A DNA stretch of 15,699 bases from IMGVR_UViG_3300017469_000161:1-15699; one strand, 5' to 3'; positions 1 to 15,699 are shown, counted from the stretch's first letter. Made by a program: numbers and translations. Notes: generated from the sequence alone by a model not told the origin.

Positions 1-416
1 ATTACAGTAAAACTAGGATTTACGATCGGATATATCGTACCTGTAGGAGCGAATCCGCTTATAGATAAGACAGCAGTTTGAGTATTATACAAATAGAATG
101 TAACTACATAGGGAGAGTTTTGTGAAATAGCAACAGTAGGGTCTGGTGCTGTAACGTTTACTATAACATATTGGTGCGGTTTCACGATTATTATGTTTGG
201 GTACCAACGGTGGCTATTAATTATAGGCACAAATACATATGTTTTATTGGTAGGGTTTTGTATGCATATCGTTATCACGTTGTACTTATTTATTTCTCCT
301 ATATCGTAAAAATCCAATACTTTTGCATGCAATTGCGGATGATAGAAAAAAATAGAAAACGTGAAAAGAGATGGTATTATAACTGCTAACATTAGTACGA
401 TTTCAAACTTTTCCAT
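1..416 (-). CDS. Partial CDS (runs off the window start): N-terminally membrane-anchored/secreted beta-rich protein, hypothetical
   Basis: Not in the ORF track; translated by hand from ATG at 416: MEKFEIVLMLAVIIPSLFTFSIFFYHPQLHAKVLDFYDIGEINKYNVITICIQNPTNKTYVF...PTGTIYPIVNPSFTV, with no stop to position 1. It has a hydrophobic N-terminal segment, NKT/NVT sequons, GGTG just upstream, and a 14-bp overlap with the end of the upstream gene. Confidence 0.8.
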   Translation of the reverse strand, partial: MEKFEIVLMLAVIIPSLFTFSIFFYHPQLHAKVLDFYDIGEINKYNVITICIQNPTNKTYVFVPIINSHRWYPNIIIVKPHQYVIVNVTAPDPTVAISQNSPYVVTFYLYNTQTAVLSISGFAPTGTIYPIVNPSFTV

Positions 417-1452
417 CTTGCACCATCCATTCCACATATTGTAACGCAAAATAAAATGTAAAATACCCCAAATCTCTAAAAGAGAATATCCATATTAACG
501 CCGGAAGACCCCAAGCCAATTCTTTCTTATTATTATATAATAGGATTAATGCGAAAAGAGACACCTCAAGCACGGTGTACATGAATGGGGGGATAGGTAA
601 ACCGAATGCGGTAAGAAATGAAAACGAAATGCCCTGGTGTGCAACCGGTTGTGTAATAGTTATAACGGACGCAAGGTATTGCTTTGAAATGAAGGGTATT
701 GATGAGAGCAGTAACGGTAACGTGAATTCTGTTATCTTTCTAAGTTTTTGATTTTCAAATTTAATTAGAAGAATAGCTATCAATATTGCAAACTGCTTTA
801 CGTCTGCAGAGATTCCTAGGAGCAGATATCTGAATCTCTCATTGAAGATTGCAAGAAACGCAATAGAATATGCGAAAAGGTTCAGTTCTTGCCCTGTGGC
901 AAAATCGTACGAAAGTGCAGGAAAGAGGAAAAAAGATGCGATGAAAACGTTTTCGCGTCTTTTGAGGAAGGAATACGTAAAAGCTAAAACAGCTGTTATT
1001 ACGTCTACTGTTTCAAGGTTATGAAAAACTGCAACGCTGATGAACGATAATGGGGGGTAAATATAGACGGACGGCAAAAATGAGTTTCCCGTAGTGCCGG
1101 TCACAACGTTAAACGGAACGTGATATACGGAAAACGCTTTAGCCATTGAGTAAAGGTACGGATTTTTTCCGTCGAGGAATAAGTGTGACGCATATAATAT
1201 TAGTGCTTCTTCATCCGTTAGGATAGGTAATCCTGTAATTATATTTGCTACAGCTGTAATAGTCGCAATAGCAAAAGCCGAAACAACGAGTATTCTTTGC
1301 CTTATGAATATAGAGAGCATACCTAAAGCAACAACGAGAAATGCGGTAGGCAATAAATACGGTTTTCCGTCACCTAAAAACGCTAATCCTATAGTGGTCA
1401 AACCCAGCCCTGCCAAAAACCATGATATATTATCTTTCAATTTTTCTTCCAT
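403..1452 (-). CDS. Polytopic membrane protein, probable GT-C fold glycosyltransferase (GT87/DUF2029-like)
   Basis: About 10 hydrophobic segments; the first large loop has TDE...G.NPY...YIYPPLSF, later GQE and KQF, matching lipid-phosphate-sugar dependent GT-C enzymes. ATG at 1452 (MEEKLK) preferred over the TTG at 1467. Confidence 0.7.
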   Translation of the reverse strand: MEEKLKDNISWFLAGLGLTTIGLAFLGDGKPYLLPTAFLVVALGMLSIFIRQRILVVSAFAIATITAVANIITGLPILTDEEALILYASHLFLDGKNPYLYSMAKAFSVYHVPFNVVTGTTGNSFLPSVYIYPPLSFISVAVFHNLETVDVITAVLAFTYSFLKRRENVFIASFFLFPALSYDFATGQELNLFAYSIAFLAIFNERFRYLLLGISADVKQFAILIAILLIKFENQKLRKITEFTLPLLLSSIPFISKQYLASVITITQPVAHQGISFSFLTAFGLPIPPFMYTVLEVSLFALILLYNNKKELAWGLPALIWIFSFRDLGYFTFYFALQYVEWMVQDGKV

Positions 1453-1489
1453 AACCGACGCCTGCAAACCCTAATGAAATCCCTATCTC

Positions 1490-2140
1490 CTATAACCTAT
1501 CTGTGCTTATAGGAGTAATACCTAACGTCTGTGCTATTTCAAGTGGCGATAACATTTCTACTCTCATTTTCGATGTGCTTACTCCTGCAACTTCCATGAT
1601 ACTCCTTTCAAACGCTAATAAAAGTAACACTACTAGTTTATGTGCATCATTAAGCTTAGCTATTATATCGTCATAATTTGCATCGATTGATATCAAACTA
1701 TGAAGCTCTGAAAACTTTTCAGACAATTCGTCAATGGAAAGACTTGAAAACCTGTCCGTCAAAATCGACAATAAAATCTGGAAATTATCATCAATGTTAT
1801 ATGGGGTTCCGTAGAACTGCAGAGACCCGCTCTTAAGATCTTTTGTTAAAATCAATACGTAATTGTTTAGGATTTCTTGCACAGTTGTTATTTTGATGGC
1901 TTCTTTTTGTGTCACCTGCCTTGTCGGTATGATTGCTTTTTCCCTGATTGCTTGCCTGACCAGGTTTGGGTCTACTTTGACAATATTCCTCTTCCCAAGA
2001 GGCGATAATTGAGGTTGTTGTTGGGTTTGTTGTAATTGTGGAAATAGTTGCGGTGGTGCAGGCGTTGTGGTGCTTGGAATTTCATACGTGGGTTCCTGTT
2101 GCTGTTGTTGTTTTTTAGTGTTGGAGTTATTCAGGCTCAT
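1490..2140 (-). CDS. Hypothetical protein, 216 aa, Gln/Pro-rich N-terminus then helical domain
   Basis: Clean ORF with ATG start about 25 bp downstream of a TTTTTAAA TATA-like box on the minus strand (about 2166-2173); no recognisable motif. Confidence 0.8.
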   Translation of the reverse strand: MSLNNSNTKKQQQQQEPTYEIPSTTTPAPPQLFPQLQQTQQQPQLSPLGKRNIVKVDPNLVRQAIREKAIIPTRQVTQKEAIKITTVQEILNNYVLILTKDLKSGSLQFYGTPYNIDDNFQILLSILTDRFSSLSIDELSEKFSELHSLISIDANYDDIIAKLNDAHKLVVLLLLAFERSIMEVAGVSTSKMRVEMLSPLEIAQTLGITPISTDRL

Positions 2141-2238
2141 GATAAATTTCTTGCCCCAGAAGCCTTTTAAAAAGCGGTTTTAACGCTCAAACAGGTGTTT
2201 GAGGAAGATTTTTAAGTTTCTGACACCAGATGTTTTTT
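2141..2238. promoter_or_regulatory. Divergent promoter region with two TATA boxes and a central 18-bp palindrome CTCAAACA-GG-TGTTTGAG (2186-2203)
   Basis: TTTTAAAAA at 2165-2173 serves the minus-strand gene and GAAGATTTTTAAG at 2204-2216 serves the ATPase; the palindrome lies between them. Confidence 0.7.
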
Positions 2239-4002
2239 ATGCAATTACAAGAACAACAAGGAACGAACAGTGAAAATTTGTCGTCTTCTGCCGATGTTTC
2301 TACTGTTGCTAGGCGTTTGAAGGACGAGTTAGATAAATACGTTGTCGGAAATGAAGACGTCAAAACAGCTGTTATAACAGGACTTTTGACAGGGTTTCCT
2401 ACTCTGCTCATCGGAGACCCAGGTACTGCAAAAACGTATACTATCGAAATCCTTTCGAAAATGATCGATGGGGTTAAACCAGAAGAGCTTTTCATAGTAC
2501 TCGCTCACGAGGCAATGACACCAGAAGACATTTTTGGAAATACAAACCTAAAAAAATTGAGAGAAGAAGGAGTACTAGAATATATTACCGAAGGCTTCTT
2601 GCCTTCTGCTAAACTAGTCTTCATAGATGAGATTTTCAAGAGCAACAAAGTCCTTGCCGAATCGTTGTTTAGAGCGATCAACGAAAAGAAGTTCAGAAAT
2701 GGAAGTAAAGAGGTCTCGTTACCGTGGCTAGCGTTCTTTTCTGCGTCAAACGAGGTCAGGGTAAATACTCAAGCGGACAGAGCATTCCTCGATAGGTTCA
2801 AGGTATTTGCTACAGTTCTTTCGCCTAACTTGGAAGACGTGCAAAACCTCAGCTCAACCGCAGAAAGGTATCATAAAGTTCTTACAGCAACTAAGCCGAG
2901 TTCCATCCCAACTGTAACGAGTTATGACGAAGTTAAAAAAATACAGGAGAAAATTCTTTCAGATTACATCAAATACACAACGCAAGATATTGTACTCGAA
3001 GCGGTGAAGCAGGCTAATCTCATCCTAGGTGCAATAGCACAGGCTTTGCAAAACCCAAGAGCGTTTAGCGATTCTGGCATTGTCAGGTCGTACTTCAGAT
3101 CGATGGGCGGATATCTGACAATCAGCGAGAGAAAATTCAAAAGTATAATACAAGTCGCCAACGCGTTACGTGATATGTTCGGCAATTCAACAATTACACC
3201 AGTGCATACTGCATTAGCATTCTATCTTACAATCCCGTTCACACCAGAGCTAAAGAATATAGTATCTTCTCTAGTCCCGACATTGATCAAATCATATTTC
3301 AACACAACTGGATCGAATAATTCTTCTAATAATTCTTCTATTGATATTGCTAGCTCGCTAGATAGCATTTCTAAAATACCAGAGAAAATATTGAGGGACA
3401 AAAACCTAAATGATTTGTTAGTCAAAGCGTCGGCATACGCTGTAGATGTTATTGCTAAAAATTTTCCAGCGACGTCGCCCGAGTTAGCACAATATAAAGC
3501 AGATCTTGTTACGAAATTTTCTGAGGTAGCGAATAATAGTGATGACATACAACAGAAGCTGGCTAATTTTAAGAAAGCTGTAGGTATCCTGGTCGATATT
3601 GAAACCAAGTATGCCAGTAATACTAAAATTAAAACTTTAGCACAGAAACTGGTTCAAAATATTGTATCTACTGTCTCCAAGCAGATAGATGTAAATCGTA
3701 TAACCTCTGATGCGATGGATGAGCTTCAGAAAACTTATGAGAAGATAAAAGCTGAAATTGAAAGTAAATATAACGAACTAATGAAACTAGGAGGGAGCGA
3801 CGAGAACAGCAAACTCATCTCGGGGATACGAAAATTCTTCCCGCAATTTTCGGACGCATTACCAGAAGCAGTGGTAGCCCAAGAGCAAAAAGAAGTGATA
3901 ATGAAGCGTCTTAACATTGCTGTAAGGTGGGCGAAGAGTAAGATACTAGATTTCACAAACACATTAAATGAACTTTCACAACTGGCACAAGTGACGAAGT
4001 GA
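2239..4002 (+). CDS. MoxR/RavA-family AAA+ ATPase with helical/coiled-coil C-terminus (ATV p618-like)
   Basis: Walker A GDPGTAKT, Walker B VFIDEIFK, ASNE sensor-1, AFLDRF Arg-finger, MoxR-type N-terminal VVGNEDV..AV..GLL.G; directly followed by a VWA gene with GTGA overlap. ATG 2239 fits TATA spacing; ATG 2230 is the alternative. Confidence 0.92.
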   Translation: MQLQEQQGTNSENLSSSADVSTVARRLKDELDKYVVGNEDVKTAVITGLLTGFPTLLIGDPGTAKTYTIEILSKMIDGVKPEELFIVLAHEAMTPEDIFGNTNLKKLREEGVLEYITEGFLPSAKLVFIDEIFKSNKVLAESLFRAINEKKFRNGSKEVSLPWLAFFSASNEVRVNTQADRAFLDRFKVFATVLSPNLEDVQNLSSTAERYHKVLTATKPSSIPTVTSYDEVKKIQEKILSDYIKYTTQDIVLEAVKQANLILGAIAQALQNPRAFSDSGIVRSYFRSMGGYLTISERKFKSIIQVANALRDMFGNSTITPVHTALAFYLTIPFTPELKNIVSSLVPTLIKSYFNTTGSNNSSNNSSIDIASSLDSISKIPEKILRDKNLNDLLVKASAYAVDVIAKNFPATSPELAQYKADLVTKFSEVANNSDDIQQKLANFKKAVGILVDIETKYASNTKIKTLAQKLVQNIVSTVSKQIDVNRITSDAMDELQKTYEKIKAEIESKYNELMKLGGSDENSKLISGIRKFFPQFSDALPEAVVAQEQKEVIMKRLNIAVRWAKSKILDFTNTLNELSQLAQVTK

Positions 4003-5723
4003 GTATCATGCAAAGCTTCTTTCATGATAATGAAGATGATGAGAGAGAACTAACTAAACTAACAAACACTATTTTCGAAACACTGATAAATGATTCTGTA
4101 CGTTGGTCTGGATATCTTTCACTTCCACCAGACGTTATGGATAGTTTAAGAGATACTGTATATAAACTTGTCAAGATAGCATCACAACAAAACAAACTTC
4201 TTTTGCAATTCCCAGCAGTCCTCGCTTACTTTGTTTATAATTTTTTAAAAAATATCGATTTAGATAGAATAAAGGACATAAACGAAAAATTAAACAATAT
4301 TCAGCGTCTGATACAACGTAAAAACTTGCAAGGCTTATCATTCAGCACTATCAAACAGATGTTACAACAGGAATTACAGGAGAAAAAGTTCAGACGCAAC
4401 AGACCCAACAAAGGAGAAAAACAACAAGAACAGCAGAAACAAAGCGGAAAAAGACCCAACAAAGGAGAACAACAAGAAGGTGAAGAAGGAAACCAAGGAG
4501 AAGAAACACAACAAGGAGGAGAAGAAGGTGAGGGACAACAAAGTGGAGAAGAAGGTAACCAAGAGGAGGGAGAAGAAGGGGAGACACAAGAAGGTGAAGG
4601 AGAACAGCAAAGTGGAGAAGGGAACGAAGGAGAACAGGGCAATGCCCAAGAAGGACAGGAATCAGAAGGAGAAAGAGGAAATGAAGAGAGTCAAAGCGGA
4701 GAAGAAGGTGGAGAACAAGGAGAGGAATTAGGATTAGGAGAAGAAGGGCAAGAAAGCGGAGAAGAAGGACAAAACATGAATCAAGAGGGTGAGGAGCAAC
4801 AAGGAGAGGAATCAGAAGGTGAAGGTGGAGGGGAACAAGGAGAGGAATTAGGAGAGGGAGGACAGGAAAACGAAGGGCAAAATAGTGAGGAACAGGAAGG
4901 AGAGGAAAGTGAACAAGGAGGAGAACAAGGAAATGAAAACGAAGAGAAACAAAGTGGAGAAGAAAGCGGAGAAGGTCAGAATGGCGAACAAGGGGAAGAA
5001 AGCCAGGAGGGTAACGAGCAGGAAAATGAGAAACAAAGCGGAACTGAAGGGAATGAAGGAGAAGAGGGAGAAGAAGAGAGTCAAAGCGGAGAAGAAGGGG
5101 GAACGCAGGAAGGAGAAAGAGAGGGTGGGGAACAAGAATCAGGAGAAGGACAAGAAGGTGAAATCGAAGGAAATCAAGAGGAGGGAGAGGAAGGAGAACC
5201 GCAAGAAGGTGAAGGAGAGGGAGAAGGACAGAGTGGAGAAGAAGGTAACCAAGGTCAAAGCGGAGAAGAAGAGGGACAGCAAGGTGAAAGCGAAGAAAAT
5301 CAGGGTCAAAATAGTGAACAAGAATCAGAAGGTGGAGAAGGACAGGAAATCGAAGATGTTACAGAAGACCTCGAAAATAGCATAGATGAAGAATCAAGAA
5401 TTTTAGATGAATTGCAAGAAAGCCTTCAAGAGTCCGTATCGGCTTTATCTATTGGGAAAGGCTCAGGAGGAGGAATATTAAAGGATATCAATCCTAGAGT
5501 TTTAGAATTATTAGAGAGAGCTAACAGGGTTTTGGCTTTGGCTAATCAAGTTGATTTACAGTACGCTAACAGAGGCGTTAAAGATCAGGGAGGGGTGATG
5601 AAGGGAATAACGACTGGAAATAATGTCAAACATATGTTTAAGAGCCAACTAGTTTTACCAGATGAAATTTTCCTCGAACGGTATACAAATAGAGCTGATG
5701 AAGGGAATAACAACTGGAAATAA
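3999..5723 (+). CDS. N-terminal part of VWA-domain partner of the MoxR ATPase (ATV p892-like), with about 320-aa Glu/Gly/Gln-rich linker; truncated by a frameshifting duplication
   Basis: GTG start overlaps the ATPase stop; helical N-domain, long acidic low-complexity tract, then GITTGNNVKHMFKSQLVLPDEIF, resembling the pre-VWA segment of ViaA/CoxE-like proteins. Goes out of frame at the 5695/5696 duplication junction. Confidence 0.8.
   Translation: MSIMQSFFHDNEDDERELTKLTNTIFETLINDSVRWSGYLSLPPDVMDSLRDTVYKLVKIASQQNKLLLQFPAVLAYFVYNFLKNIDLDRIKDINEKLNNIQRLIQRKNLQGLSFSTIKQMLQQELQEKKFRRNRPNKGEKQQEQQKQSGKRPNKGEQQEGEEGNQGEETQQGGEEGEGQQSGEEGNQEEGEEGETQEGEGEQQSGEGNEGEQGNAQEGQESEGERGNEESQSGEEGGEQGEELGLGEEGQESGEEGQNMNQEGEEQQGEESEGEGGGEQGEELGEGGQENEGQNSEEQEGEESEQGGEQGNENEEKQSGEESGEGQNGEQGEESQEGNEQENEKQSGTEGNEGEEGEEESQSGEEGGTQEGEREGGEQESGEGQEGEIEGNQEEGEEGEPQEGEGEGEGQSGEEGNQGQSGEEEGQQGESEENQGQNSEQESEGGEGQEIEDVTEDLENSIDEESRILDELQESLQESVSALSIGKGSGGGILKDINPRVLELLERANRVLALANQVDLQYANRGVKDQGGVMKGITTGNNVKHMFKSQLVLPDEIFLERYTNRADEGNNNWK
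4401..5350 (+). repeat. Purine-rich degenerate coding repeats (QSGEEG/QEGE/GEQGEE units; AGACCCAACAAAGGAGAA twice at 4401-4418 and 4452-4469)
   Basis: Directly visible recurring units such as CAAAGCGGAGAAGAAG and CAAGGAGAGGAAT on an A/G-dominated plus strand. Confidence 0.85.
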
Positions 5724-5795
5724 TGTCAAACATATGTTTAAGAGCCAACTAGTTTTACCAGATGAGATTTTCCTCGAACGGTATACAAATAGAGC
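5596..5795 (+). repeat. Tandem duplication of exactly 100 bp (5596-5695 / 5696-5795), 2 mismatches
   Basis: TGATGAAGGGAATAAC...GTATACAAATAGAGC occurs twice; differences are G5612/A5712 and A5666/G5766. Confidence 0.97.
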
Positions 5796-6348
5796 CTTAC
5801 TGCAAAGAGCGGTAGAAAATGAGGGCGTTGGGGACTTATATTTCATGATAGATAAAAGCGGGTCTATGGGAGCTCCTATGCCGAACGGGTACACGGCGTT
5901 TGAAAACGTTTCCGCTGTAGCCTTAGCTTCTGCTATGGAAGTAGAAAAGAATAGTAAGAAGGTGTTTGTGCAATACTTCGATACTTCGTCAACGGAGCCT
6001 CTGGATGTTAACAACGTTTTCGAAGTAGCTCAGACCACACCTGGAGGAGGAACGAACATGATGGTTGCATTACGAGACTTCATGGAATATTATAATAACT
6101 ATCCAGGGTTAAAGGACATAAAACAGATCTTCATACTATCTGATTTTGAGACGGATTATGATACTACGCTTTATTATTTCAAGAACTTTGCCAGAAATAA
6201 TGGCTTAGTAGTTACGTGCATACATGTATATAATGATGAAGTGCCTGCCGGTATGCAATCCATAATAGACGAACTCTGTGATGAATATTATAAATTTAAT
6301 AATTATGACGCCAGCGAATTATTTTCAGTCGTGTATTCGAAGCTTTAG
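5698..6348 (+). CDS. C-terminal VWA (von Willebrand A) domain portion of the split MoxR partner gene
   Basis: MIDAS motif YFMIDKSGSM (DxSxS), PGGGTN (T), FILSDF (D). The frame is open from 5662; it joins the 3999 ORF in frame if one 100-bp copy is removed (2250 nt, 749 aa). Confidence 0.88.
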   Translation: MKGITTGNNVKHMFKSQLVLPDEIFLERYTNRALLQRAVENEGVGDLYFMIDKSGSMGAPMPNGYTAFENVSAVALASAMEVEKNSKKVFVQYFDTSSTEPLDVNNVFEVAQTTPGGGTNMMVALRDFMEYYNNYPGLKDIKQIFILSDFETDYDTTLYYFKNFARNNGLVVTCIHVYNDEVPAGMQSIIDELCDEYYKFNNYDASELFSVVYSKL

Positions 6349-6382
6349 CTCTTTTTAATACCTTACGACCCAAGTTAAAACC

Positions 6383-6742
6383 ATGAAATATTACGAAGTT
6401 AATGTGAGGACGTATTTGCCGGAGCCGGTCGCAGAATATTTCGTAAACTGCTTTTCACTAAAATTGCCGAACAAGTATTATGAGGTCGGTGATGTAATAA
6501 CATTTAGAGATGAGGAGAAAAAGGTAAGCGTCAATGTGCCAACAGAGCAAGTTAGAGGCATTACAGACGCATTACTGGCGTCTGCGTTAGATTTTTATAT
6601 AGCTCTCGCCGTTTGCACCGACAACAATATTTTGCTATACCGTATGATAAAAAAGGCGAGAGCAAAAGTAAAGGAAATGCTAAAAATAGATAATATAAAC
6701 CTCGACCCTGAGTTTCCAATCTGTCTAAAAGGTGGTAAATGA
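6383..6742 (+). CDS. Hypothetical protein, 119 aa
   Basis: ATG about 24 bp after TTTTTAAT (about 6352-6359), consistent with a leaderless transcript; its stop overlaps the next start (ATGA). Confidence 0.8.
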   Translation: MKYYEVNVRTYLPEPVAEYFVNCFSLKLPNKYYEVGDVITFRDEEKKVSVNVPTEQVRGITDALLASALDFYIALAVCTDNNILLYRMIKKARAKVKEMLKIDNINLDPEFPICLKGGK

Positions 6743-7185
6743 TGCAACATGAACTTACACCGTCTGATATGATCGCACTAATCTCTGAAGCTTTAGGGGA
6801 AAAAGATGAGGAGGGCGACCCAGAGACCTTGATAAAACTATTACTACGCGACGATTTGCCTAAACAAACGAGGTTAATTATTCTTAACTGTATCGTGAAA
6901 AACTGCGGGTTGCAGACAAGTTTATCAATATTAGATCCATTTATTCCCATAGAGGAAATACAATCAATAGAGACGTTGAAAATCGAGGGGACGAAAATAC
7001 TTGCGTGCATTAATTATACAAAAGTTAGAGATTGTTATTTGATAATTTTAGCGAATAGACAGTTCCATATAAAAAGAGTAACTAATCCTGCCGAATTATT
7101 ACAGAAGGTGAAGCAACAGCAAGGAGGAGGAAAGAAACAAAGCAAGGATATTATTTTAAGTAAGCTCGGAGGTGAGGATCTCTGA
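6739..7185 (+). CDS. Hypothetical protein, 148 aa
   Basis: ATGA overlap with the upstream gene, GGTGG RBS, co-oriented in a probable operon with the downstream ATPase. Confidence 0.8.
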   Translation: MMQHELTPSDMIALISEALGEKDEEGDPETLIKLLLRDDLPKQTRLIILNCIVKNCGLQTSLSILDPFIPIEEIQSIETLKIEGTKILACINYTKVRDCYLIILANRQFHIKRVTNPAELLQKVKQQQGGGKKQSKDIILSKLGGEDL

Positions 7186-7223
7186 CGGCTCCCCGCCCTA
7201 AAGGGCGAGGGTTCATAAGACGG
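7182..7223 (-). mobile_element. IS200/IS605-family end-like palindromic remnant flanked by 11-bp direct repeat GGTGAGGATCT (7171-7181, 7224-7234)
   Basis: Minus strand reads GAACCCTCGCCC-TTTA-GGGCGGGGAGCCGTCAG, a GC-rich hairpin ending in TCAG that resembles, from memory, right ends of Sulfolobales tnpB elements. No transposase gene nearby. Confidence 0.6.
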
Positions 7224-7234
7224 GGTGAGGATCT

Positions 7235-8746
7235 GTGATATGCGAAGTCGTTGCCAGTTCATTTAAGCCACGTGACGGTGACGTTGTGAACGCTGACATA
7301 ACAAACATACGTTTTGCGTATCCACCGAGCTGTATCTTCTCGTCTCAGTACACGCAATTCATTTATGTTGATCATCCTTTGCCGAAGATAAGCCGTCTAA
7401 GGTTTAAGAGAGAGAATGGGGAAGAAGTGAAGGACGACAATTACGTCGTAATAGATATTGGAGACGATTTCTTAGTTTTACCAATAGAAGTTTGGAATAA
7501 ACTGAAGGAGCTTATATCGACTTACCTTAGTGAAGGAACTTTGCACGGAGGCATCCTATTGTACGGCGTCCCAGGCACCGGTAAATCATACATTGCTACT
7601 AAATTACTTACAAGGATTCTGGGGTTGAAAGCAATTGTTAAGCAACCTACCGATTTCTTAACAAAATATGTCGGTGAACCTTACCAATTGCTAAACGATT
7701 TCATAAATAGACAACTATTTTCCAACAAACCTTCCATCATAGTTTTTGACGAGGGAGAAAGGCTTTTACTAAAAAGAGGTGGAGGGGGCGAAGCTGAAAA
7801 ATTGGTAGAGGACAATATGAAGAATATATTATTAGAAAAATTGCAGGAATTTGCGGATTCGCAATATCCTTCGATTCTCGCATTAACTACTAACGCTTCA
7901 ATAAACGATATGGACGACGCAATGCTGAGGAGGTTTCCCTGGAAAATTTATTTCCCTCCCTATTCGCACACCGTTTACGAGTACATAGCGAGGAAGATAA
8001 CTACACAAAGAACTTTCAAAATTGAGGATAAGGAATATGATGTGCAGAAACTATCGTTTTATGCATCTGCTACCGGGATTTCTGTAGCTGAGTTCAGGAC
8101 TATAGTACAGACTGGGACTATCTCTTTTCTCAGGTCAAAAAGTAACTTCCCGAGGAGACTTGTGCCATTCGAATTACAAGATAAGGAAAGTATTTTAGAT
8201 ATAACGAAATTGCCCCAACTCAGGCGTTTTGATATCAAAAATAAGAACGTAAAAATGTTATGCGAAGGAGCATTATATACTATGACTGCAGTAGTAACAA
8301 GCTATTTTCTTACAAGTGAGAATAGACCCGTTTACCTTATAGATTTACAAGAGTCCACTTCCTTGAGGTATGGAAGCGATGATATTATTACATTACTCAA
8401 GCAGGAAAACAAACCTGTCGGTATAATTCATATGCATGGCAATCTCAACATCAACAAACAGCTGTTAATAGAGCGTCTACTCGAAGAGGATAACGTTAGT
8501 TTTGTGGTAATAACGAGTTTTGATAGTTCATTATTACAAGTACAAACATTGAAGCTTCTACCTAGGATTGATATAACACAATTGCCTGCAACTGACACAG
8601 ACATTTTGAAAAAAATATTGTACACGGTAGACACATTTTACGGGCTGAAGTTGGACATGCAAAAAACTATGAACGAACTGTACAGGGAGATGGACTTTAG
8701 AAAAGCTATGGACGTGTTGGAGAAAATGATCGCCATGACAATCTAA
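7235..8746 (+). CDS. AAA+ ATPase (classical CDC48-like AAA domain), probably ATV p529-like
   Basis: GILLYGVPGTGKS Walker A, TKYVGE pore loop, IIVFDE Walker B, LTTN sensor-1, DDAMLRRF second region of homology; GGTGAGG RBS before the GTG start. Confidence 0.88.
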   Translation: MICEVVASSFKPRDGDVVNADITNIRFAYPPSCIFSSQYTQFIYVDHPLPKISRLRFKRENGEEVKDDNYVVIDIGDDFLVLPIEVWNKLKELISTYLSEGTLHGGILLYGVPGTGKSYIATKLLTRILGLKAIVKQPTDFLTKYVGEPYQLLNDFINRQLFSNKPSIIVFDEGERLLLKRGGGGEAEKLVEDNMKNILLEKLQEFADSQYPSILALTTNASINDMDDAMLRRFPWKIYFPPYSHTVYEYIARKITTQRTFKIEDKEYDVQKLSFYASATGISVAEFRTIVQTGTISFLRSKSNFPRRLVPFELQDKESILDITKLPQLRRFDIKNKNVKMLCEGALYTMTAVVTSYFLTSENRPVYLIDLQESTSLRYGSDDIITLLKQENKPVGIIHMHGNLNINKQLLIERLLEEDNVSFVVITSFDSSLLQVQTLKLLPRIDITQLPATDTDILKKILYTVDTFYGLKLDMQKTMNELYREMDFRKAMDVLEKMIAMTI

Positions 8747-8751
8747 GCGAC

Positions 8752-8776
8752 GAGCCTCGCCCAGGGGAGGAAGTCA
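8752..8776 (+). repeat. Degenerate copy of the IS-end-like hairpin motif (GAGCCTCGCCCAGGGGAGGAAGTCA)
   Basis: Aligns to the reverse complement of 7182-7214 (CCTCGCCC...GGGGAG..GTCA) with the loop and part of one arm deleted. Confidence 0.5.
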
Positions 8777-8783
8777 ACTAAAC

Positions 8784-8800
8784 TTTTTAAACAGCTGTTT
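8784..8800 (+). promoter_or_regulatory. TATA box (TTTTTAAA) overlapped by palindrome AAACA-GC-TGTTT (8789-8800)
   Basis: TATA ends about 24 bp before ATG 8815; the palindrome matches the motif at the other promoters. Confidence 0.6.
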
Positions 8801-8814
8801 TAGAGCTATATATA

Positions 8815-9279
8815 ATGAGTGAAAATAATAGTAATAAGCGTCTTTCTTCATTCGCGACGTATGCAGAAGCTATAGCGAAAATACTAAACTTAATATATAC
8901 AATTGACCAACTTTCGCAATATTACAATCTTAACCAAATCTCTACACAGTACCTTAACGCGTCATTTACCCCTATTTCACCTAAAAAAATTGCAAATTAT
9001 TTTGGAGTTCAATACAACAAAATACCAAACCTAGTTCAGCAAACACAATACAATCCTGTGGCATTGGTAACTAAGGCAAATCAAATTGCACAGCAAATTG
9101 AACCAGATGTGTTAAATTCCCTGGCGTCCATGTATGGCGTCGAACCAGAGATAGTAAAATCGTTACAGGTATACCTACAGCTTGCACAAGTTTTGCCAAA
9201 ATTAGTTAATAATCAATCTGTTCAAGTCACTACTAACACGCAATATACAGCATCACCTAACGTATTAGAAAATTACTGA
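8815..9279 (+). CDS. Hypothetical protein, 154 aa, Gln/Asn-rich helical, possible virion protein
   Basis: Clean ORF with its own promoter; function inferred only from context and the shared promoter palindrome. Confidence 0.75.
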   Translation: MSENNSNKRLSSFATYAEAIAKILNLIYTIDQLSQYYNLNQISTQYLNASFTPISPKKIANYFGVQYNKIPNLVQQTQYNPVALVTKANQIAQQIEPDVLNSLASMYGVEPEIVKSLQVYLQLAQVLPKLVNNQSVQVTTNTQYTASPNVLENY

Positions 9280-9305
9280 CCCCCTCAACCCCCCAGAAAG
9301 TTAAA
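9280..9305 (+). repeat. Direct repeat copy 1 (CCCCCTCAACCCCCCAGAAAGTTAAA) containing a BRE/TATA-like element
   Basis: Near-identical to 9796-9820 (one indel, one substitution). Confidence 0.8.
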
Positions 9306-9332
9306 AATCATTATAATATAGATAATCTATTG

Positions 9333-9764
9333 ATGTCGAGACTACTGAAATTTGCCATAGTAGGAGGGGTAGGCACTTTGGTCAATGAACTAGTATTTTT
9401 ATCTACTACCAAGCTTTTATCCATATCGATATCATTAGCATTAGCAATTGAAATTTCAATAATTTTCAATTTTATGTTAAACGATGTATGGACATTTAAA
9501 GATAAGAGAATAGGAAACACATGGAAAAGGCTACTTAAATTTCATATGTCGTCAGCTAGTGGAGGAATTATTCAATATGCTGTGGTAGTTTCAATTATTG
9601 TAATTATGTTTCATTTTAGTAATGCCTCGGAAATAGTGACAATCTTGTTTTTTACGTCTTATTTAAAACTTCAATCTTTAGTACTTGGCATAATCAATTT
9701 CATAGGAATAATTTCTGGGTTCATCGTAAGATTTATAACAAGTATAAAGTGGGTATGGGTGTGA
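9333..9764 (+). CDS. GtrA-family membrane protein (putative lipid-linked sugar flippase)
   Basis: LLKFAIVGGVGTLVN N-terminus, NFMLNDVWTFKD, RLLKF and C-terminal RF...KWVW; four TM segments. ATG 9333 (TTG 9330 alternative). Confidence 0.88.
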   Translation: MSRLLKFAIVGGVGTLVNELVFLSTTKLLSISISLALAIEISIIFNFMLNDVWTFKDKRIGNTWKRLLKFHMSSASGGIIQYAVVVSIIVIMFHFSNASEIVTILFFTSYLKLQSLVLGIINFIGIISGFIVRFITSIKWVWV

Positions 9765-9820
9765 ACTACCACGCCCTCGCGGAGGGGGACTTTCGCCCCC
9801 TCAACCCCCAGAAATTTAAA
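9765..9820 (+). repeat. GC-rich hairpin element plus direct repeat copy 2 (9796-9820) ending in GAAA-TTTAAA BRE/TATA
   Basis: GAGGGGG (9782-9788) pairs with CCCCCTC (9796-9802); alternative stem CCCTC-GCG-GAGGG (9774-9786). Resembles, from memory, Sulfolobales IS605-type left ends. Confidence 0.6.
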
Positions 9821-9824
9821 CATG

Positions 9825-9840
9825 TAAAACATATGTTTTA
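9825..9840 (+). promoter_or_regulatory. Perfect 16-bp palindrome TAAAACATATGTTTTA between TATA and start codon (putative operator)
   Basis: TATA at 9815-9820, ATG at 9844. Confidence 0.7.
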
Positions 9841-9843
9841 ATT

Positions 9844-12117
9844 ATGGTAGTGATGAGAGTTAAGAGAAAGACCATATTCCTAATCCTGCTATATGCATTT
9901 TTCTTTATCTTACCATTTTTCCTGTTAACAGCAAAAGCTAGTCTTATCCAACAAGAAGTACCTATCTCAGTTAATGTAAACGCAAACATTTCGCAAGGGC
10001 TAATTTACATTGCTCCACTCCCACAACAAACCCAAGTGTTCGGTCAAAATTACTACGTATCAAACTCATTGGGTTATTATGAATACTCATATTTGTTCTC
10101 AGCAACACCACCGTTGCTGGTATGGTACGAGCCAGCTCCTTCATCACAAACTTATTATTTCGTTTACGGGGGAAATACTCAAGCTAGTGCCGTAACCACT
10201 GGTGTGTTTAGTTTTTTCACTCAGTTCTATTATCTCAACACCTCTATCTTCAATGTTTCCGGTGTTTCGTTACTTGGAGGGTCATTGGTGCTAAACGGGC
10301 AAAATAGCCTTGTAACTTTTACAACGACTGCGTTGCGTTATACATCTGCAGTTATGCTTTACACCTTTCAATCTTCAGCTGTTCTAACGCCACCTGAATT
10401 GATATATACTGGCTCAATTCCTTCAGGTAGCATAGTTACGCTAAGCCTTTTCTCATATTCCAACTTACAGACAATACCTTCGTATACCGCGTTTCCTTTC
10501 GGGTCTACGACCTGGGTTATGGCTTCCGACGGTTACGTTAAAAGCACACAATTCACAATTTCAAATACACAATTTACATATAACGCCCAGGTGGCAGGCA
10601 TGCCGAACGAAGAAGTTGCCAAAGTCGCTTTGCCACAATCATCTATGTACGGATTGGTGTTTGGGTCGTCAGTGCTTTTACAGTACCCTTCTACTCAATA
10701 TTTAGCACCGCAAACTGTAGCCCCGCAATCCATTACGTTTAACGATACTTTTGCCGTATCTCAAAGTGCATCCTACGGTTCTAATTCCGTCCTGTTAGAA
10801 GACCCAGTATACTTCTTTAACCCAACGTTACTTAACGGTTCTAATATCCTAGTGTATAACGATAGCAAATGGTACTCCTTACCAGTGCAAGCCAGCAATC
10901 TGAAACTTGACCTAAACCATGTAGACATGTATATTTTACCTTATAACTCGTCTTCCAATTACATATCCTTCGAAGATATACCAGTGGGTAGTACAATTTC
11001 AATCAAGTATACAAACGGCTCCACATATTCTGTTACCGCGAGCGGGAACACGGTAAACACAGTAGGAGGCGTGAGTTTAGTTGATCTTAAAATTTATGGA
11101 CGGAATGTGGTAGGGATATCGATCCAGCCGTCGTTAACAAACACACAAGTCAATTACAACATGCTTGTTGGGTTTACTGACTTTTTGCACAAAGCTGGGC
11201 TGATAGTAAATACGACAGGCGTATATGTATATAACTCTCAAACAGCTGTTACAAAGCTGGTAAAGAATCCGCAATTCCCAGCTGATGTTGGAGTTGGCTA
11301 TGCAGACATAGGCAATATATTCTATCTCATAGGTTTCTATTATTACCCAGGTTCTTTTTACACGTTCATAACGCCTATGCCAAACCCGGTCGCGTCAACT
11401 GGTATAGTTCCTTATATTAATTATAATGGCACAATACCGCTATCTGTATCAAGTATCGGTACAACACTGTCTTCCGGTCTGTATTATGAAACTACAGGTA
11501 TCGTATCAGTTGCAACAGGTTTGCCTACAGCATTACAGTCTTCCGTGCTCAGTTTGACGACAGCTCCGGGAGACGCAATAGTCAATAACAATAATACAGT
11601 CTACCAAACTAAGCTAACAAATTCGTCGTCTCTAACACTAGTAGGCTTCACTGGGTATAACCTTGTTGTACAGTATGGGAACATACAATCCCAACTTCTC
11701 ATATCCAGTAACTATTACCCAACAAACTTGCCAACGAATTTACAAGTAGTTGTTACAGTATCGGAATCCTCTAGGTCGATAACAATTTCCACATCACCGC
11801 TACCAGTGAAACCAGTCCAGGTTGCATCATTGAATGTTACTAATACAACCAATGTAAAGTATAACGGTAGTAGCGGATCTTCATTTACAACTAGTATACA
11901 TTCGACAAATAACCAACTAATAGGAATTATAACATACTATAGTTTTCTAGCAATAGCTGTAGCATCTTATCGTTATTCTTCTCAACTGTGGTCTTCAACA
12001 TTGTTTCTTAGTTTCGCTACACTCTCTATAGGTCTGCTCTTCGCTAACTATATAGTACTACCCTTCAGTATCGGTGCCGTAATATTAGGCTTCATCTTCA
12101 AAAGGCTAAACCTCTGA
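9844..12117 (+). CDS. Large secreted, C-terminally membrane-anchored Ser/Thr/Tyr-rich glycoprotein (putative virion envelope/adhesion protein), 757 aa
   Basis: Signal peptide (KRK, hydrophobic stretch, AKA-S), beta-rich charge-poor body, 15 N-X-S/T sequons by manual count, about 3 C-terminal TM helices ending KRLNL. Confidence 0.85.
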   Translation: MVVMRVKRKTIFLILLYAFFFILPFFLLTAKASLIQQEVPISVNVNANISQGLIYIAPLPQQTQVFGQNYYVSNSLGYYEYSYLFSATPPLLVWYEPAPSSQTYYFVYGGNTQASAVTTGVFSFFTQFYYLNTSIFNVSGVSLLGGSLVLNGQNSLVTFTTTALRYTSAVMLYTFQSSAVLTPPELIYTGSIPSGSIVTLSLFSYSNLQTIPSYTAFPFGSTTWVMASDGYVKSTQFTISNTQFTYNAQVAGMPNEEVAKVALPQSSMYGLVFGSSVLLQYPSTQYLAPQTVAPQSITFNDTFAVSQSASYGSNSVLLEDPVYFFNPTLLNGSNILVYNDSKWYSLPVQASNLKLDLNHVDMYILPYNSSSNYISFEDIPVGSTISIKYTNGSTYSVTASGNTVNTVGGVSLVDLKIYGRNVVGISIQPSLTNTQVNYNMLVGFTDFLHKAGLIVNTTGVYVYNSQTAVTKLVKNPQFPADVGVGYADIGNIFYLIGFYYYPGSFYTFITPMPNPVASTGIVPYINYNGTIPLSVSSIGTTLSSGLYYETTGIVSVATGLPTALQSSVLSLTTAPGDAIVNNNNTVYQTKLTNSSSLTLVGFTGYNLVVQYGNIQSQLLISSNYYPTNLPTNLQVVVTVSESSRSITISTSPLPVKPVQVASLNVTNTTNVKYNGSSGSSFTTSIHSTNNQLIGIITYYSFLAIAVASYRYSSQLWSSTLFLSFATLSIGLLFANYIVLPFSIGAVILGFIFKRLNL

Positions 12118-12143: not shown

Positions 12144-12177
12144 GAAAAAACTTATATTCATCTCAAACATATGTTTT
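12144..12177 (+). promoter_or_regulatory. BRE/TATA (GAAAAAACTTATAT) followed by CTCAAACATATGTTT palindrome (core 12165-12176)
   Basis: Located upstream of ATG 12189; same motif as at 9825 and 14529. Confidence 0.7.
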
Positions 12178-12188
12178 ACTGAGCTAAA

Positions 12189-13631
12189 ATGGAAGTGTAC
12201 TTACTAAACTTGTATCCAGGCACCGTCACTGTTACAGTAACTGATAATACTAATGGGAACTCGCAAACATATACGCTATCACAATATCAATACGTCGACA
12301 TTTCATCTATGATATCATCGCTATCCGATAGTCTCACAGTACAAGTACCTGGTGTAGGTACGGGTAATATACAACTTTTTTCTCCTACCCAAACAATATA
12401 CATTACTCAAAATAATATATATTCAAACTCTTTACCACCAGTTGCCACACTAAAAGAAATTCTCTATGACAACATTCTACAAAACATGAACACTGACATT
12501 ATAAATGTATTTCAAGCGTTGAACTCACTAATTTCTGAGTACGCTTCTGGGAAACCACTATCGCCATCTGCTTTATCTAACGTATCGTCAACTCTTCAGC
12601 AAATTAACAAAATGTTACAAAACGCTATACAATTTGAAAATGAAACTTCAACAACTTTCGAAGGAGTATCTGCGTATCAGCAAGTGTATAATAATTTAAA
12701 TCAAATATACGAGTCGCTAACTAACGATACATTGACAGTTGAGGAATTACAAAGTTTACAATTACCTAGTTATAGCACACCAGAGGCTGGTACTATAGCT
12801 TCTATTTATACACGACTACTTAATAATGCAATTAATACTATGAAAAGTGCTAGCTCACAGAGGAATAGCTCTACTTCATCGTCATCAACTAGCTCACAGA
12901 GCAAATCGTCATCAACTAGAACTCAAACATCTACACCGTCTAGCTCACAGGGAGCTAGCTCACAGGGAGCTGAGACATCAGGGCCTCTCCCACCAGGATC
13001 GTACGGGTGGATAAGCACACACACATCGAATGTAATACCAACACCACCCCCGTCATCAGGATCATCAGGAGGAACAACAACCGTGGCTACGACCCAGACT
13101 TCTACTCCTTCATCGTCATCATCTAGTACTCCAACATCTGTGTCGTCTTCGTCTCCTACTACATCCCCGACTCCGAGTTCTACCACATCTCCAACATCAT
13201 CCACATCTCCCACTACAATATCTCAGGGACAAGTGCTCGCTCAGATACAGGCAGGCGACATAAGTTCGCTTCAATCAGAAATATCAGAAATACCCCCAGA
13301 GATACTTCCAGTAGTTAGTGCTGTTACTCAATTGTACCAAATATATGACATACCAGATGGAACGCCATTATCTACTGTACTTGAACGTTTACTTAGTGAT
13401 ATTAGGGACGCATATTATAAAATAAGTAACCATAAGCAGGAACAAGTAAACACTCAAAAACTATCAATGCTACTGCAAGTATATAATACTCTTGCTAGTA
13501 ATGGATTAGCACCTGCAAGCCAAAGTGCGTCGAAATTAAGTAACCTGGTGCAAACTTCTGGAATTATACCAGCTGTACCATCTGTTTTAGGTCAATCTTA
13601 TCCGGGCAAGATATATAGCAATTTAGTCTAG
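12189..13631 (+). CDS. Hypothetical structural protein, 480 aa: beta N-domain, helical domain, Ser/Thr/Pro linker, helical C-domain
   Basis: Long ORF with its own promoter; low-complexity S/T tract with internal repeats (TAGCTCACAG four times, TQTSTPSS twice). Confidence 0.82.
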   Translation: MEVYLLNLYPGTVTVTVTDNTNGNSQTYTLSQYQYVDISSMISSLSDSLTVQVPGVGTGNIQLFSPTQTIYITQNNIYSNSLPPVATLKEILYDNILQNMNTDIINVFQALNSLISEYASGKPLSPSALSNVSSTLQQINKMLQNAIQFENETSTTFEGVSAYQQVYNNLNQIYESLTNDTLTVEELQSLQLPSYSTPEAGTIASIYTRLLNNAINTMKSASSQRNSSTSSSSTSSQSKSSSTRTQTSTPSSSQGASSQGAETSGPLPPGSYGWISTHTSNVIPTPPPSSGSSGGTTTVATTQTSTPSSSSSSTPTSVSSSSPTTSPTPSSTTSPTSSTSPTTISQGQVLAQIQAGDISSLQSEISEIPPEILPVVSAVTQLYQIYDIPDGTPLSTVLERLLSDIRDAYYKISNHKQEQVNTQKLSMLLQVYNTLASNGLAPASQSASKLSNLVQTSGIIPAVPSVLGQSYPGKIYSNLV

Positions 13632-14170: not shown

Positions 14171-14521
14171 TTAGTATTCGGAAACCATCTGCCGTGCATT
14201 CATGCCCGATAACAAGTTGTATGCTTCTTGCACTACAGGGAGATATTGCTGTTGGACTTCTGGTGGAATTTCAACGTCCTGGAACCCCATACCTCTCTTC
14301 TTCAACCCAGCATTATCTACTGCAGACCTTATTTCTTCTACTACTTTATGAAGAATTTCTTTTACTTGTGGGTATCCATCTCTGGTTGCGTTAGCCTCAA
14401 TTCCTGCTAGCTTTAACGTTATTGTTGGGTATTTTGTTACTTTCCCTTCTAGTATCGCCTTCAACGCACGTCTTGCTCCACCTAGGACGTCTCCTTTTCT
14501 TGGGAAATACTCATCCACCAT
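14171..14521 (-). CDS. Bicaudavirus four-helix-bundle coat/virion protein, ATV p131-like, 116 aa
   Basis: Y.P.KGD..GGA, YP..TLKLAG.EANA.R.G, KE..H..V and G.GFQ...IP.EV motifs match the ATV p131 sequence as I recall it. The true start is ATG 14521 (MVDEYF); the ORF-track extension to 14575 runs through the promoter. Confidence 0.85.
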   Translation of the reverse strand: MVDEYFPRKGDVLGGARRALKAILEGKVTKYPTITLKLAGIEANATRDGYPQVKEILHKVVEEIRSAVDNAGLKKRGMGFQDVEIPPEVQQQYLPVVQEAYNLLSGMNARQMVSEY

Positions 14522-14528
14522 TTTTGGT

Positions 14529-14568
14529 CTCAAACATATGTTTGAGCTAGTGGTTAAAAAACTTTTCG
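14529..14568 (-). promoter_or_regulatory. Coat-gene promoter: BRE GAAAAG, TATA TTTTTTAA, and perfect 18-bp palindrome CTCAAACATATGTTTGAG (14529-14546)
   Basis: The palindrome lies between the TATA box and ATG 14521, over the expected transcription start. Confidence 0.75.
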
Positions 14569-14664
14569 GATGCATTTCTAAGCATTTGGCACGTCAATTG
14601 GGGTTGAATAGGGACAGTTTCAGCCAAACCAGTTAGACAGAACATGGCTAACTCCCGACGTTCA

Positions 14665-15699
14665 TCAACCAACGTTCACCACACGCAATGCCCAGATGGA
14701 ATAAATCAGAGCAACGACTGCAAGCACAACTGTTAGCAACACTATAGACATCGGGAAACCTATGGCAAGGAGGAAAGGTGCTACTGCAGTAATGTAAACA
14801 ACAGCCCCTAGTGCCATACTGTTCGGAATTGTCCTGAACACGAAACCGATGAAGAACGATACAAAGAATAGTATAGCAATTGCAGTAGCTCCTAGGAAAG
14901 GTGAATTCGCAATTGCATTAGTCAGGGAAACGACAGCAAACCGCTGATAAGTGAGGGGTATGGTAACAGTAGAATTCGTAGTCTTCACTGTAACATTTCC
15001 AGTAGTCATTGGTAACGTTACCGTATTTGGAGATGTAACGCTTTCAGATGACAGTACTGTGCCGTTAGATGCAGTAAATGTGACGTTCACATTAACGTTT
15101 GTCGGCGACGAAAGCACCAACTCAGGTTTATTTATAGAATAATTATAAATTAAGTACGCTGTCACACTGCTGTTTGAAGAGGGTATGGAATAATGAACCA
15201 ACCAAGGTGCTGTAAGATAAACACTACCATTGATTATAACACTTGCTTGATTAGGGTTAATGGTGGTTGTGGTGGTAGTTGTGGTTGTAGTGGTGGTGGT
15301 CGTTGGTGGTGATGATGATACGGTAGAAGATGATACCAAGTTAGGTTGATAATTAGCGTAGAAAGTCACTTTTTCAGATTGAGGGAGTATCACTACTCCA
15401 CCAGTGAGGGACTGATAATTCTGTTCTGGTACTCCGAAAGGAGAGATTACGAATGACTGAGATGGGGAAATTACTGTAAAAGTTAGTGTCGTTTCGTTAT
15501 ATGTTACGGATATAGGAGATGGAGACACTGCGAGGACTGGGACGTTATACGTTACATTATAAAATGAGAAAGATGCCCCTATGATACCATTAGTGCCTGG
15601 AATTGTGAGGTAGTTTTCGCCATCAACCAGCTGTGTGTTTTGGACTGTGATCGAAGTGTTTGTGATAGTGTAGGAGAGAGAGAACGGCGAATAGAAGTT
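14665..15699 (-). CDS. Partial CDS (start outside window): C-terminus of a large membrane-anchored glycoprotein with a Thr14 linker and about 3 terminal TM helices
   Basis: The frame stays open from 15699 (NFYSPFSLSYTITNTSITVQ...) into the listed 287-aa ORF, so GTG 15528 is internal. It has many N-X-S/T sequons and poly-Thr at 15262-15303. Confidence 0.85.
   Translation of the reverse strand, partial: NFYSPFSLSYTITNTSITVQNTQLVDGENYLTIPGTNGIIGASFSFYNVTYNVPVLAVSPSPISVTYNETTLTFTVISPSQSFVISPFGVPEQNYQSLTGGVVILPQSEKVTFYANYQPNLVSSSTVSSSPPTTTTTTTTTTTTTTINPNQASVIINGSVYLTAPWLVHYSIPSSNSSVTAYLIYNYSINKPELVLSSPTNVNVNVTFTASNGTVLSSESVTSPNTVTLPMTTGNVTVKTTNSTVTIPLTYQRFAVVSLTNAIANSPFLGATAIAILFFVSFFIGFVFRTIPNSMALGAVVYITAVAPFLLAIGFPMSIVLLTVVLAVVALIYSIWALRVVNVG

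Follow-up and report, generated by a model that had tools for sequence, protein, structure and literature searches.

A conserved AACA-NN-TGTT palindrome at promoters and inside genes of Sulfolobus monocaudavirus-like viruses: evidence for DNA-level selection on the intragenic copies

Introduction

Almost nothing is known about gene control or DNA organization in bicaudaviruses and monocaudaviruses. The 15,699-base IMG/VR contig IMGVR_UViG_3300017469_000161:1-15699 (the window, i.e., the whole stretch of DNA analyzed here; CheckV estimate, 29% of the genome) carries a strict gapped palindrome, AACA-NN-TGTT, in front of several genes as well as inside coding sequence. Judged by the identity of its MoxR-type ATPase (81% to the SMV4 and 80% to the SMV1 counterpart), its gene order, which is that of SMV1 gp10 to gp27, and its gene content, the window is part of the genome of a hot-spring archaeal virus, a bicaudavirus of the Sulfolobales that resembles the Sulfolobus monocaudaviruses (SMV-like). 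The locus raises the question whether the intragenic cores are a by-product of the encoded peptides or copies of the promoter element that are maintained as DNA, and what might read them. An original prediction, made from the sequence alone, held that a binding protein may act genome-wide in DNA organization, packaging, looping or roadblock repression, rather than only at promoters.

This paper describes the enrichment, conservation and distribution of the palindrome in the window, in related viruses and in their hosts. We consider it about an even chance (probability roughly 0.5) that the intragenic cores are selected copies of the promoter palindrome, serving as secondary sites for a putative dimeric binder of viral origin.

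Results

Enrichment of the palindrome in the window and inside genes

Twelve AACA-NN-TGTT cores are present in the window against 0.43 expected from dinucleotide shuffles, a number reached in none of 200 shuffles (Table 1). Five are located in promoter regions and seven inside genes; since the core at 5729 duplicates that at 5629, six of the intragenic sites are independent. This agrees with the original prediction, which had listed the same seven intragenic cores and at least 11 independent cores in total, against roughly 0.5 expected by composition. As it had also described, four sites (988, 2364, 8457 and 11241) share one reading, AAACAGCTGTTA, with a CTCA flank at 11241, and the cores occupy two codon phases, x-T-A-V in one (988, 2364 and 11241) and K-Q/H-L/M-L/F in the other (4354, 5629/5729 and 8457).

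The intragenic counts were compared with three null models of rising stringency, of which the first shuffles codon order, the second permutes synonymous codons and thereby keeps protein and codon usage, and the third additionally preserves the dinucleotides at codon junctions and was run on the window with the duplicate removed. Codon-order shuffling yielded 0.55 copies where the window has 7 (0 of 2000 shuffles) and 1.30 where SMV1 has 20. Upon synonymous permutation these expectations rose to 2.17 and 4.43, and the observed numbers were reached in none of 2000 permutations. The most stringent null gave 2.45 copies against 6 in the window (5 of 2000 reach 6) and 6.88 against 20 in SMV1 (0 of 2000), and the enrichment thus survived codon-aware shuffles of the kind that had been proposed as a check. 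The encoded proteins accommodate the word more readily than shuffled codon strings do, and the excess goes well past that level.

Perfect cores are approximately 20-fold enriched, and one-mismatch variants occur at chance level (40 vs 37 in SMV1, 11 vs 12 in the window). Selection on the motif is therefore all-or-none, and all eight core positions are required.

Conservation of the cores and their decay in SMV2

Conservation was assessed in 12 related loci, SMV1 to SMV4 among them, with phase-matched 10-mers from the same genes as controls. The eight core positions of the six independent sites scored 0.959 compared to 0.860 for the controls (P about 0.0008). The excess of synonymous-site conservation for which the original prediction had suggested looking was found as well: third-codon positions within the cores scored 0.90 vs 0.80 (P 0.024), and 0.94 vs 0.83 when SMV2 was left out (P 0.008). 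Among orthologous copies the central dinucleotide varies while the half-sites hold, GC and TA being predominant, and the central two bases thus appear to behave as expected of an uncontacted spacer. For example, at promoter site 2190, the centre of an 18-bp palindrome CTCAAACAGGTGTTTGAG (2186-2203), the relatives have GG, CC, GA or GC between constant half-sites. Promoter site 14533 is likewise the centre of a perfect 18-bp palindrome, CTCAAACATATGTTTGAG (14529-14546).

Individual intragenic sites follow the same pattern. Those at 988 and 8457 are each retained in 11 of the 12 relatives, SMV2 being the sole loss at 988 and having lost the motif at 8457 by synonymous changes within a preserved KQLL. 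The half-sites at 4354 are intact in all 12 relatives, including SMV2, and a GA to GC exchange in the centre swaps Met and Leu. The site at 5629 is retained in 10 of 12 and is disrupted in SMV3 and SMV2 through a synonymous AAA to AAG change. At 2364 the inner ACAGCTGT is retained, but the outer T, a third position of Val, varies freely in 7 of 12 relatives; in SMV2 three synonymous changes erase the motif and leave the KTAV peptide intact, and the ATV MoxR gene has ACAGCTGT at the same K-T-A-V codons, though its protein and that of the window are just 36% identical.

SMV2 contains only six perfect copies, though nearly its whole gene set is common with its SMV relatives, and one-mismatch relics are in excess in this virus (45 vs 25 expected). 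It retains 1 of 10 window sites at 75% identity, which equals the neutral expectation (10%), compared to 9 of 11 in SMV3 at 81% identity, where about 18% would be expected. Promoter and intragenic copies decayed together in SMV2, and the KTAV (2364) and KQLL (8457) peptides stayed unchanged. To judge from these alignments, this decay provides the strongest evidence of DNA-level selection on the intragenic copies in the other lineages. As SMV2 loses nearly all copies yet has the gene set, the palindrome system would be an accessory layer, neither a basal promoter nor a packaging requirement.

These data bear directly on the possibility that recurrent peptides (K-Q-L-L/F and T-A-V) combined with codon preference generate the word, the DNA itself being unselected. 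Protein-preserving shuffles do yield 2.2-2.5 copies in the window compared to 0.55 in codon-order shuffles. Nevertheless, every protein-preserving null falls below the observed counts, synonymous positions are conserved, the flanks match the promoter consensus (see below), and the peptides outlive the word in SMV2. A coding by-product is thereby largely refuted and may be regarded as extremely improbable, in line with the earlier argument that a peptide motif alone does not explain the cores. Codon choice in these viral genes is shaped by selection at the DNA level.

Relation between promoter and intragenic copies

The palindrome marks nearly every SMV promoter, where it follows the TATA-like box, precedes the start codon and has the full consensus CTCAAACA-[GC/TA]-TGTTTGAG. 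In SMV1 a TATA-like box is found within 30 nt of 13 of the 17 promoter copies, most of which end 3-33 nt before the start codon, and about 18 copies are present in approximately 5 kb of intergenic DNA vs 19-20 in 43 kb of coding DNA. The half-site flanks of the intragenic copies, which lie outside the search pattern, have A at -1 in 29, C at -2 in 17 and T at -3 in 21 of 40 cases; they follow the promoter consensus over -1 to -3 and depart from it at -4. Because of these shared flanks, the sequences support the intragenic cores being the same element as the promoter sites. Centres are mostly GC inside genes; promoters favor TA. The intragenic copies, with shorter flanks and no TATA box, are of lower grade, probably limited by coding. 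The orientation of the extended flank relative to the gene displayed no upstream or downstream bias (16 vs 13 of 20).

Intragenic copies could in principle mark promoters within genes, or the limits of nested genes missed by annotation, and would then be promoter copies that happen to be inside long frames. The site at 11241 invites this interpretation, as it has the CTCA flank and is the only intragenic copy of the window with a TATA-like run (tatgtatataa) just upstream, and as the SMV3 orthologue of gene 9844-12117 is annotated as two genes split near this position; the split, however, falls in a stretch with Ns. More generally, the frames are open and conserved across the sites, and, with 30 nt inspected in both directions, only 3 of the 20 SMV1 intragenic copies have a TATA-like box nearby (null 4.0), in contrast to the 13 of 17 promoter copies. 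Lacking TATA boxes, the intragenic copies are therefore not internal promoters, with 11241 as a possible exception, and this explanation is very unlikely. The palindrome was also rejected as a basal archaeal promoter element, as hosts are not enriched for it, SMV2 promoters lost it, and half of the copies are intragenic without a TATA box. An RNA hairpin role was judged unlikely, as the core leaves a 2-nt loop and sequence rather than pairing is conserved; no Rfam family matched the element.

Pairs of copies less than 400 bp apart are depleted in SMV1, SMV3, SMV4 and ATV, and short-range operator pairs or cooperativity were rejected on this basis. The proposal of genome-wide action stood in part: the element is present throughout the SMV clade and is the same as at the promoters, which makes action of one putative binding protein at promoter and intragenic copies alike the best-supported reading. 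Two of the functions proposed with it are weakened in a particular form: short-range looping is disfavored by the depletion of close pairs, and essential packaging by the loss of nearly all copies in SMV2 and by a 4.6-kb gene that carries none (see below).

In SMV1 the end of an IS200/IS605 element (25272-27072) exactly adjoins a motif copy at 27063. GC-rich sequence resembling this IS200/IS605 end is found just upstream of other motif promoters, and a short similar stretch precedes 8790 (window positions about 8745-8780).

Distribution among viruses and hosts

No other gapped palindrome is as over-represented in SMV1, SMV3, SMV4 or the window as AACA-NN-TGTT, which leads by a wide margin in the three SMV genomes, with 37 copies in SMV1, 43 in SMV3 and 40 in SMV4, about half of which are intragenic. 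Among the contigs that bear the 18-mer in the 2.9 million viral contigs of IMG/VR, all motif-rich ones are SMV-like. ATV has a variant, ACAGCTGT with different flanks, in 44 copies, of which 28 are in coding sequence vs 2.2 expected. A further variant in ATSV, CACA-NN-TGTG, has 18 copies, mostly at promoters (coordinates read by eye). In STSV2 neither the palindrome nor an ATV- or ATSV-type variant was found. A non-coding stretch of ATSV that is annotated as a repeat region (9306-10119) contains eleven TTGCACAYAAGCAA-type palindromes, separate from the promoter palindrome, with gaps of 38 or 76 bp in 7 of 10 cases; this may be an origin or iteron array.

The 47 Sulfolobaceae genomes searched, about 106 Mb in total, contain 131 copies of AAACANNTGTTT, compared to 162 of the reversed control. 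This corresponds to approximately 1.2 per Mb, vs several hundred per Mb in the viruses, and a host regulon motif was rejected, there being no excess over the control. Twelve host copies were inspected, of which two are CRISPR spacers derived from SMV promoter regions; the remaining ones have no flanks or gene context in common. The CRISPR-array copies (loci L080 and L081) belong to host genomes G027 and G029. Moreover, hot-spring metatranscriptome contigs contain pieces of the window (9226-9260, 10000-10041, 10393-10431 and 10650-10683) joined to CRISPR-repeat-like sequence. On the basis of these matches, hosts appear to carry and transcribe spacers against this virus.

Gene content of the window

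The genes of the window and all twelve cores are collected in Table 1. Tandem copies of 100 nt (5591-5690 and 5691-5790, 96% identical), the second of which contains the core at 5729 that the original prediction had listed as a duplicate, shift the frame of the von Willebrand A (vWA) gene; removal of one copy restores an intact frame of 2250 nt. The duplication is present in none of the 12 relatives, and it may be a mixed-strain assembly artefact or a natural frameshifting repeat, for which the 16-bp 'Sader' repeat in SMV1a provides a comparison case (PMC12199143). The same gene contains a long low-complexity run rich in Glu, Gly and Gln (window 4400-5400), in which the coding strand is strongly purine-skewed (GC skew 0.36-0.39, AT skew 0.33-0.51).

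The long frame of the RIP/P131 gene opens at 14575, and its probable start is the second ATG at 14521, with which the promoter palindrome has the same upstream distance as in SMV4. The RIP/P131 family takes in the ATV RNA polymerase inhibitor ORF145. The 3' part of a gp10-like gene is found at 14665-15699. Its protein is 59-61% identical to that of ATV and ATSV, compared to 20-42% for most other common genes; the integrase is a second identity outlier (77-85%). This high identity, combined with the absence of motif copies from the gene, suggests a recent exchange between lineages with different motif variants.

Table 1. AACA-NN-TGTT cores and genes in the window.
Feature	Position	Strand	Gene or location	Codons	Remarks
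Intragenic core AACAGCTGTT	988..997		membrane-protein gene 403-1467 (-)	I-T-A-V-L	
Promoter copy	2190..2199		divergent intergenic region, 1490-2140 (-) / MoxR 2230-4002 (+)		
Intragenic core	2364..2373		MoxR ATPase gene	K-T-A-V	weakest case
Intragenic core AACAGATGTT	4354..4363		vWA gene	K-Q-M-L	
Intragenic core AACATATGTT	5629..5638		vWA gene	K-H-M-F	
Non-independent intragenic core	5729..5738		second copy of 100-nt tandem duplication		duplicate of 5629
Intragenic core AACAGCTGTT	8457..8466		AAA ATPase gene 7235-8746	K-Q-L-L	
Promoter copy	8790..8799		15 nt before start of 8815-9279		right after TTTTTA box
Promoter copy	9828..9837		6 nt before start of transmembrane-protein gene 9844-12117		
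Intragenic core	11241..11250		gene 9844-12117	Q-T-A-V	CTCA flank
Promoter copy	12166..12175		13 nt before start of 12189-13631		
Promoter copy	14533..14542		11 nt before likely start 14521 of RIP/P131-family gene (-)		
Membrane-protein gene	403-1467	-			
Gene bordering divergent intergenic region	1490-2140	-			
MoxR-type ATPase gene	2230-4002	+			
vWA protein gene	3999-6348				split into 3999-5723 and 5662-6348
AAA ATPase gene	7235-8746				homologue of ATV p529 and SMV1 ORF503
Gene 3' of promoter copy 8790	8815-9279				
GtrA-like protein gene	9330-9764				
Large transmembrane-protein gene	9844-12117				
Gene 3' of promoter copy 12166	12189-13631				
RIP/P131-family gene	14171-14521	-			Pfam PF22238

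Candidate binding proteins

Profile searches with 51 SMV1 proteins across seven genomes revealed a single SMV1 family, the gp01/gp02-like proteins, that occurs in each of the five genomes with the motif and is missing from both SMV2 and STSV2. Its members are SMV1 gp01/gp02 (62-614), SMV3 gp01 and gp80, SMV4 gp01, ATV ORF127 and ATSV gp82, their loci including L077 56-337 and L028 5591-5974. The AlphaFold model (pLDDT 85) predicts a four-stranded sheet with two helices in an acidic protein. The correlation of this family with the motif is a lead only, and the family is not put forward here as the binding protein. Among the SMV1 proteins, only gp50 appears to be a clear and conserved DNA binder; it is a predicted tandem ribbon-helix-helix protein, and its second repeat has a weak resemblance to Arc and ORF56. 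Pfam scans of the window and SMV1 proteins, carried out without a structural screen of all proteins, detected no E2-like beta-barrel domain.

Restriction-type sites are normally avoided rather than enriched. The palindromes might nonetheless be recognition sites of an enzyme, i.e., a nuclease, nickase, methyltransferase or recombinase, since they are all-or-none, full 10-bp palindromes and their inner CAGCTG and CATATG are similar to the sites of Type II restriction enzymes. A candidate would be the C-terminal domain of the p529-like ATPase (7235-8746), as that of ATV p529 has DNA-binding and DNA-cleaving activity in vitro (PMC4124505). This protein is uniformly 85-93% identical in SMV2 and present in STSV2, both of which count as motif-free, and on account of this equal conservation in SMV2 it was also rejected as the binder. 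Furthermore, the approximately 20-fold enrichment runs counter to the usual avoidance of such sites, and no methyltransferase or restriction gene was found in the window or is annotated in SMV1. Enzyme sites are thus a decidedly doubtful explanation.

Discussion

Taken together, the enrichment, the conservation, the flanks shared with promoters, the confinement to one virus clade and the coordinated decay in SMV2 lead us to infer that the intragenic cores are read as DNA, in the following manner. A sequence-specific DNA-binding protein, probably dimeric and belonging to the virus lineage rather than to the host, would read the palindrome. In archaeal promoters, a protein bound between the TATA-like box and the start gates initiation, and at SMV promoters a factor bound at this position would accordingly interfere with or gate initiation. 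The intragenic copies would most likely be secondary sites at which the factor is retained on viral DNA and can act while that DNA is transcribed, whether as a roadblock or as an anchoring or bridging point; putative roles in roadblocking, anchoring or long-range bridging are plausible.

Several observations weigh against this reading. No binding protein was pinned down among the viral candidates compared, and the window contains no clear candidate; gp50 was rejected because SMV2 has it too, and the gp01/gp02-like family is acidic, its model having no significant match to a PDB or DNA-binding fold. The intragenic copies are not more evenly spaced than random when the promoter copies are held fixed (P 0.25), and the gp10-like gene (4.6 kb, SMV1 12117-16769) is motif-free in SMV1, SMV3 and SMV4. 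Finally, published RNA-seq of SMV1a places gp03, gp05, gp06, gp09, gp11 and gp24 among the highly expressed genes from as early as 0.5 h post infection (PMC12199143), and the promoters of all six carry the motif. As motif promoters are highly active this early, a simple always-on repressor does not fit, and a constitutive repressor in productive infection is unlikely; conditional repression, activation or an architectural role could each apply to the factor.

The cargo of SMV1 virions is a fluid, protein-rich nucleoprotein, in which accessory protein amounts to about four times the DNA mass (PMC10589707). This protein-rich cargo keeps alive the alternative of a virion-borne genome-wide binder, in which a virion- or nucleoid-type protein reads the dispersed palindrome as a tag of self-DNA for organization or packaging, its location at promoters being secondary. 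A strict, all-or-none word at approximately 1 per 1.3 kb in coding and non-coding DNA is reminiscent of DNA uptake sequences, and the viral genomes carry it several hundred times more densely than host genomes do. Conversely, SMV2 dropped nearly all copies and retained the structural gene set, a motif-free stretch of 3.8-4.8 kb is conserved in SMV1, SMV3 and SMV4, and the copies cluster strongly at one set position in promoters. We consider a self-DNA tag unlikely. Somewhat less probable still is an ancient ACA-N2-TGT system common to SMV, ATV and ATSV with flanks that diverged by lineage, in which a new viral binder, perhaps of a new fold such as the gp01/gp02-like family, would coat the chromosome at approximately 1 site per 1.3 kb and may travel in the virion; the incoming genome would thereby be marked as viral and expressed at once.

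Whichever protein reads it, a clade-specific strict palindrome is present at nearly every promoter and approximately 16 times over chance inside genes. The palindrome CTCAAACAGCTGTTTGAG provides a defined probe for pulling out the binder, and there are defined sites to mutate in SMV1, of which the host Saccharolobus islandicus is genetically tractable; SMV2 serves as a natural loss-of-function relative. Should the factor prove to bridge DNA or to act on archaeal RNA polymerase during elongation, this would constitute a stoperator- or E2-like system in an archaeal virus, of which we know no earlier example. In the searchable literature on this word and on promoter motifs of these viruses (the ATV and SMV1 genome papers lying outside it), no description was found.

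Comparison with known systems

Among the small ribbon-helix-helix regulators of Sulfolobales viruses, i.e., F55 of SSV1, SvtR of rudiviruses and the aCcr1 homologues of ATV and SMV3, none is reported to have a strict site repeated dozens of times within viral genes. The 9-bp aCcr1-box, A(T/G)G(A)TA(G)A(T/G)TACN, targets host cdvA promoters (PMC9976878); it is a different word from AACA-NN-TGTT and was rejected as an explanation.

Other arrangements are known from other domains of life, the phage L5 stoperators and the papillomavirus E2 sites coming closest. The repressor gp71 of mycobacteriophage L5 (Cluster A) reportedly blocks initiation at operators and stops elongation at stoperators, as Brown et al. 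1997 are said to have described. Like the stoperators, the palindrome is one virus-specific, conserved short site with dozens of copies genome-wide, at promoters and in transcribed DNA. The L5 sites, however, are asymmetric 13-mers oriented with transcription and mostly placed in short intergenic gaps, and gp71 is their cognate repressor, whereas here a palindrome is half intragenic and its putative binder would act in an archaeal host with eukaryote-like transcription machinery.

The DNA uptake sequence (DUS) of Neisseria and the uptake signal sequence (USS) of Haemophilus are strict asymmetric words of 10-12 bp, a self tag read by the uptake machinery. With these the palindrome shares its strictness, a density of about 1 per kb in coding and non-coding DNA and a hundreds-fold lower frequency in foreign DNA; it differs from them in being palindromic, in its fixed position at promoters and in being dispensable in the close relative SMV2.

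Papillomavirus E2 sites (ACCG-N4-CGGT) are bound by one dimeric viral protein for both regulation and genome maintenance, and beside a TATA box their position decides the effect. The E2 spacer is 4 bp rather than 2, and the SMV-like viruses have far more copies per kb and belong to another domain of life. Nevertheless, both systems have strict inverted half-sites around a free spacer, with some copies next to a TATA box and others scattered.

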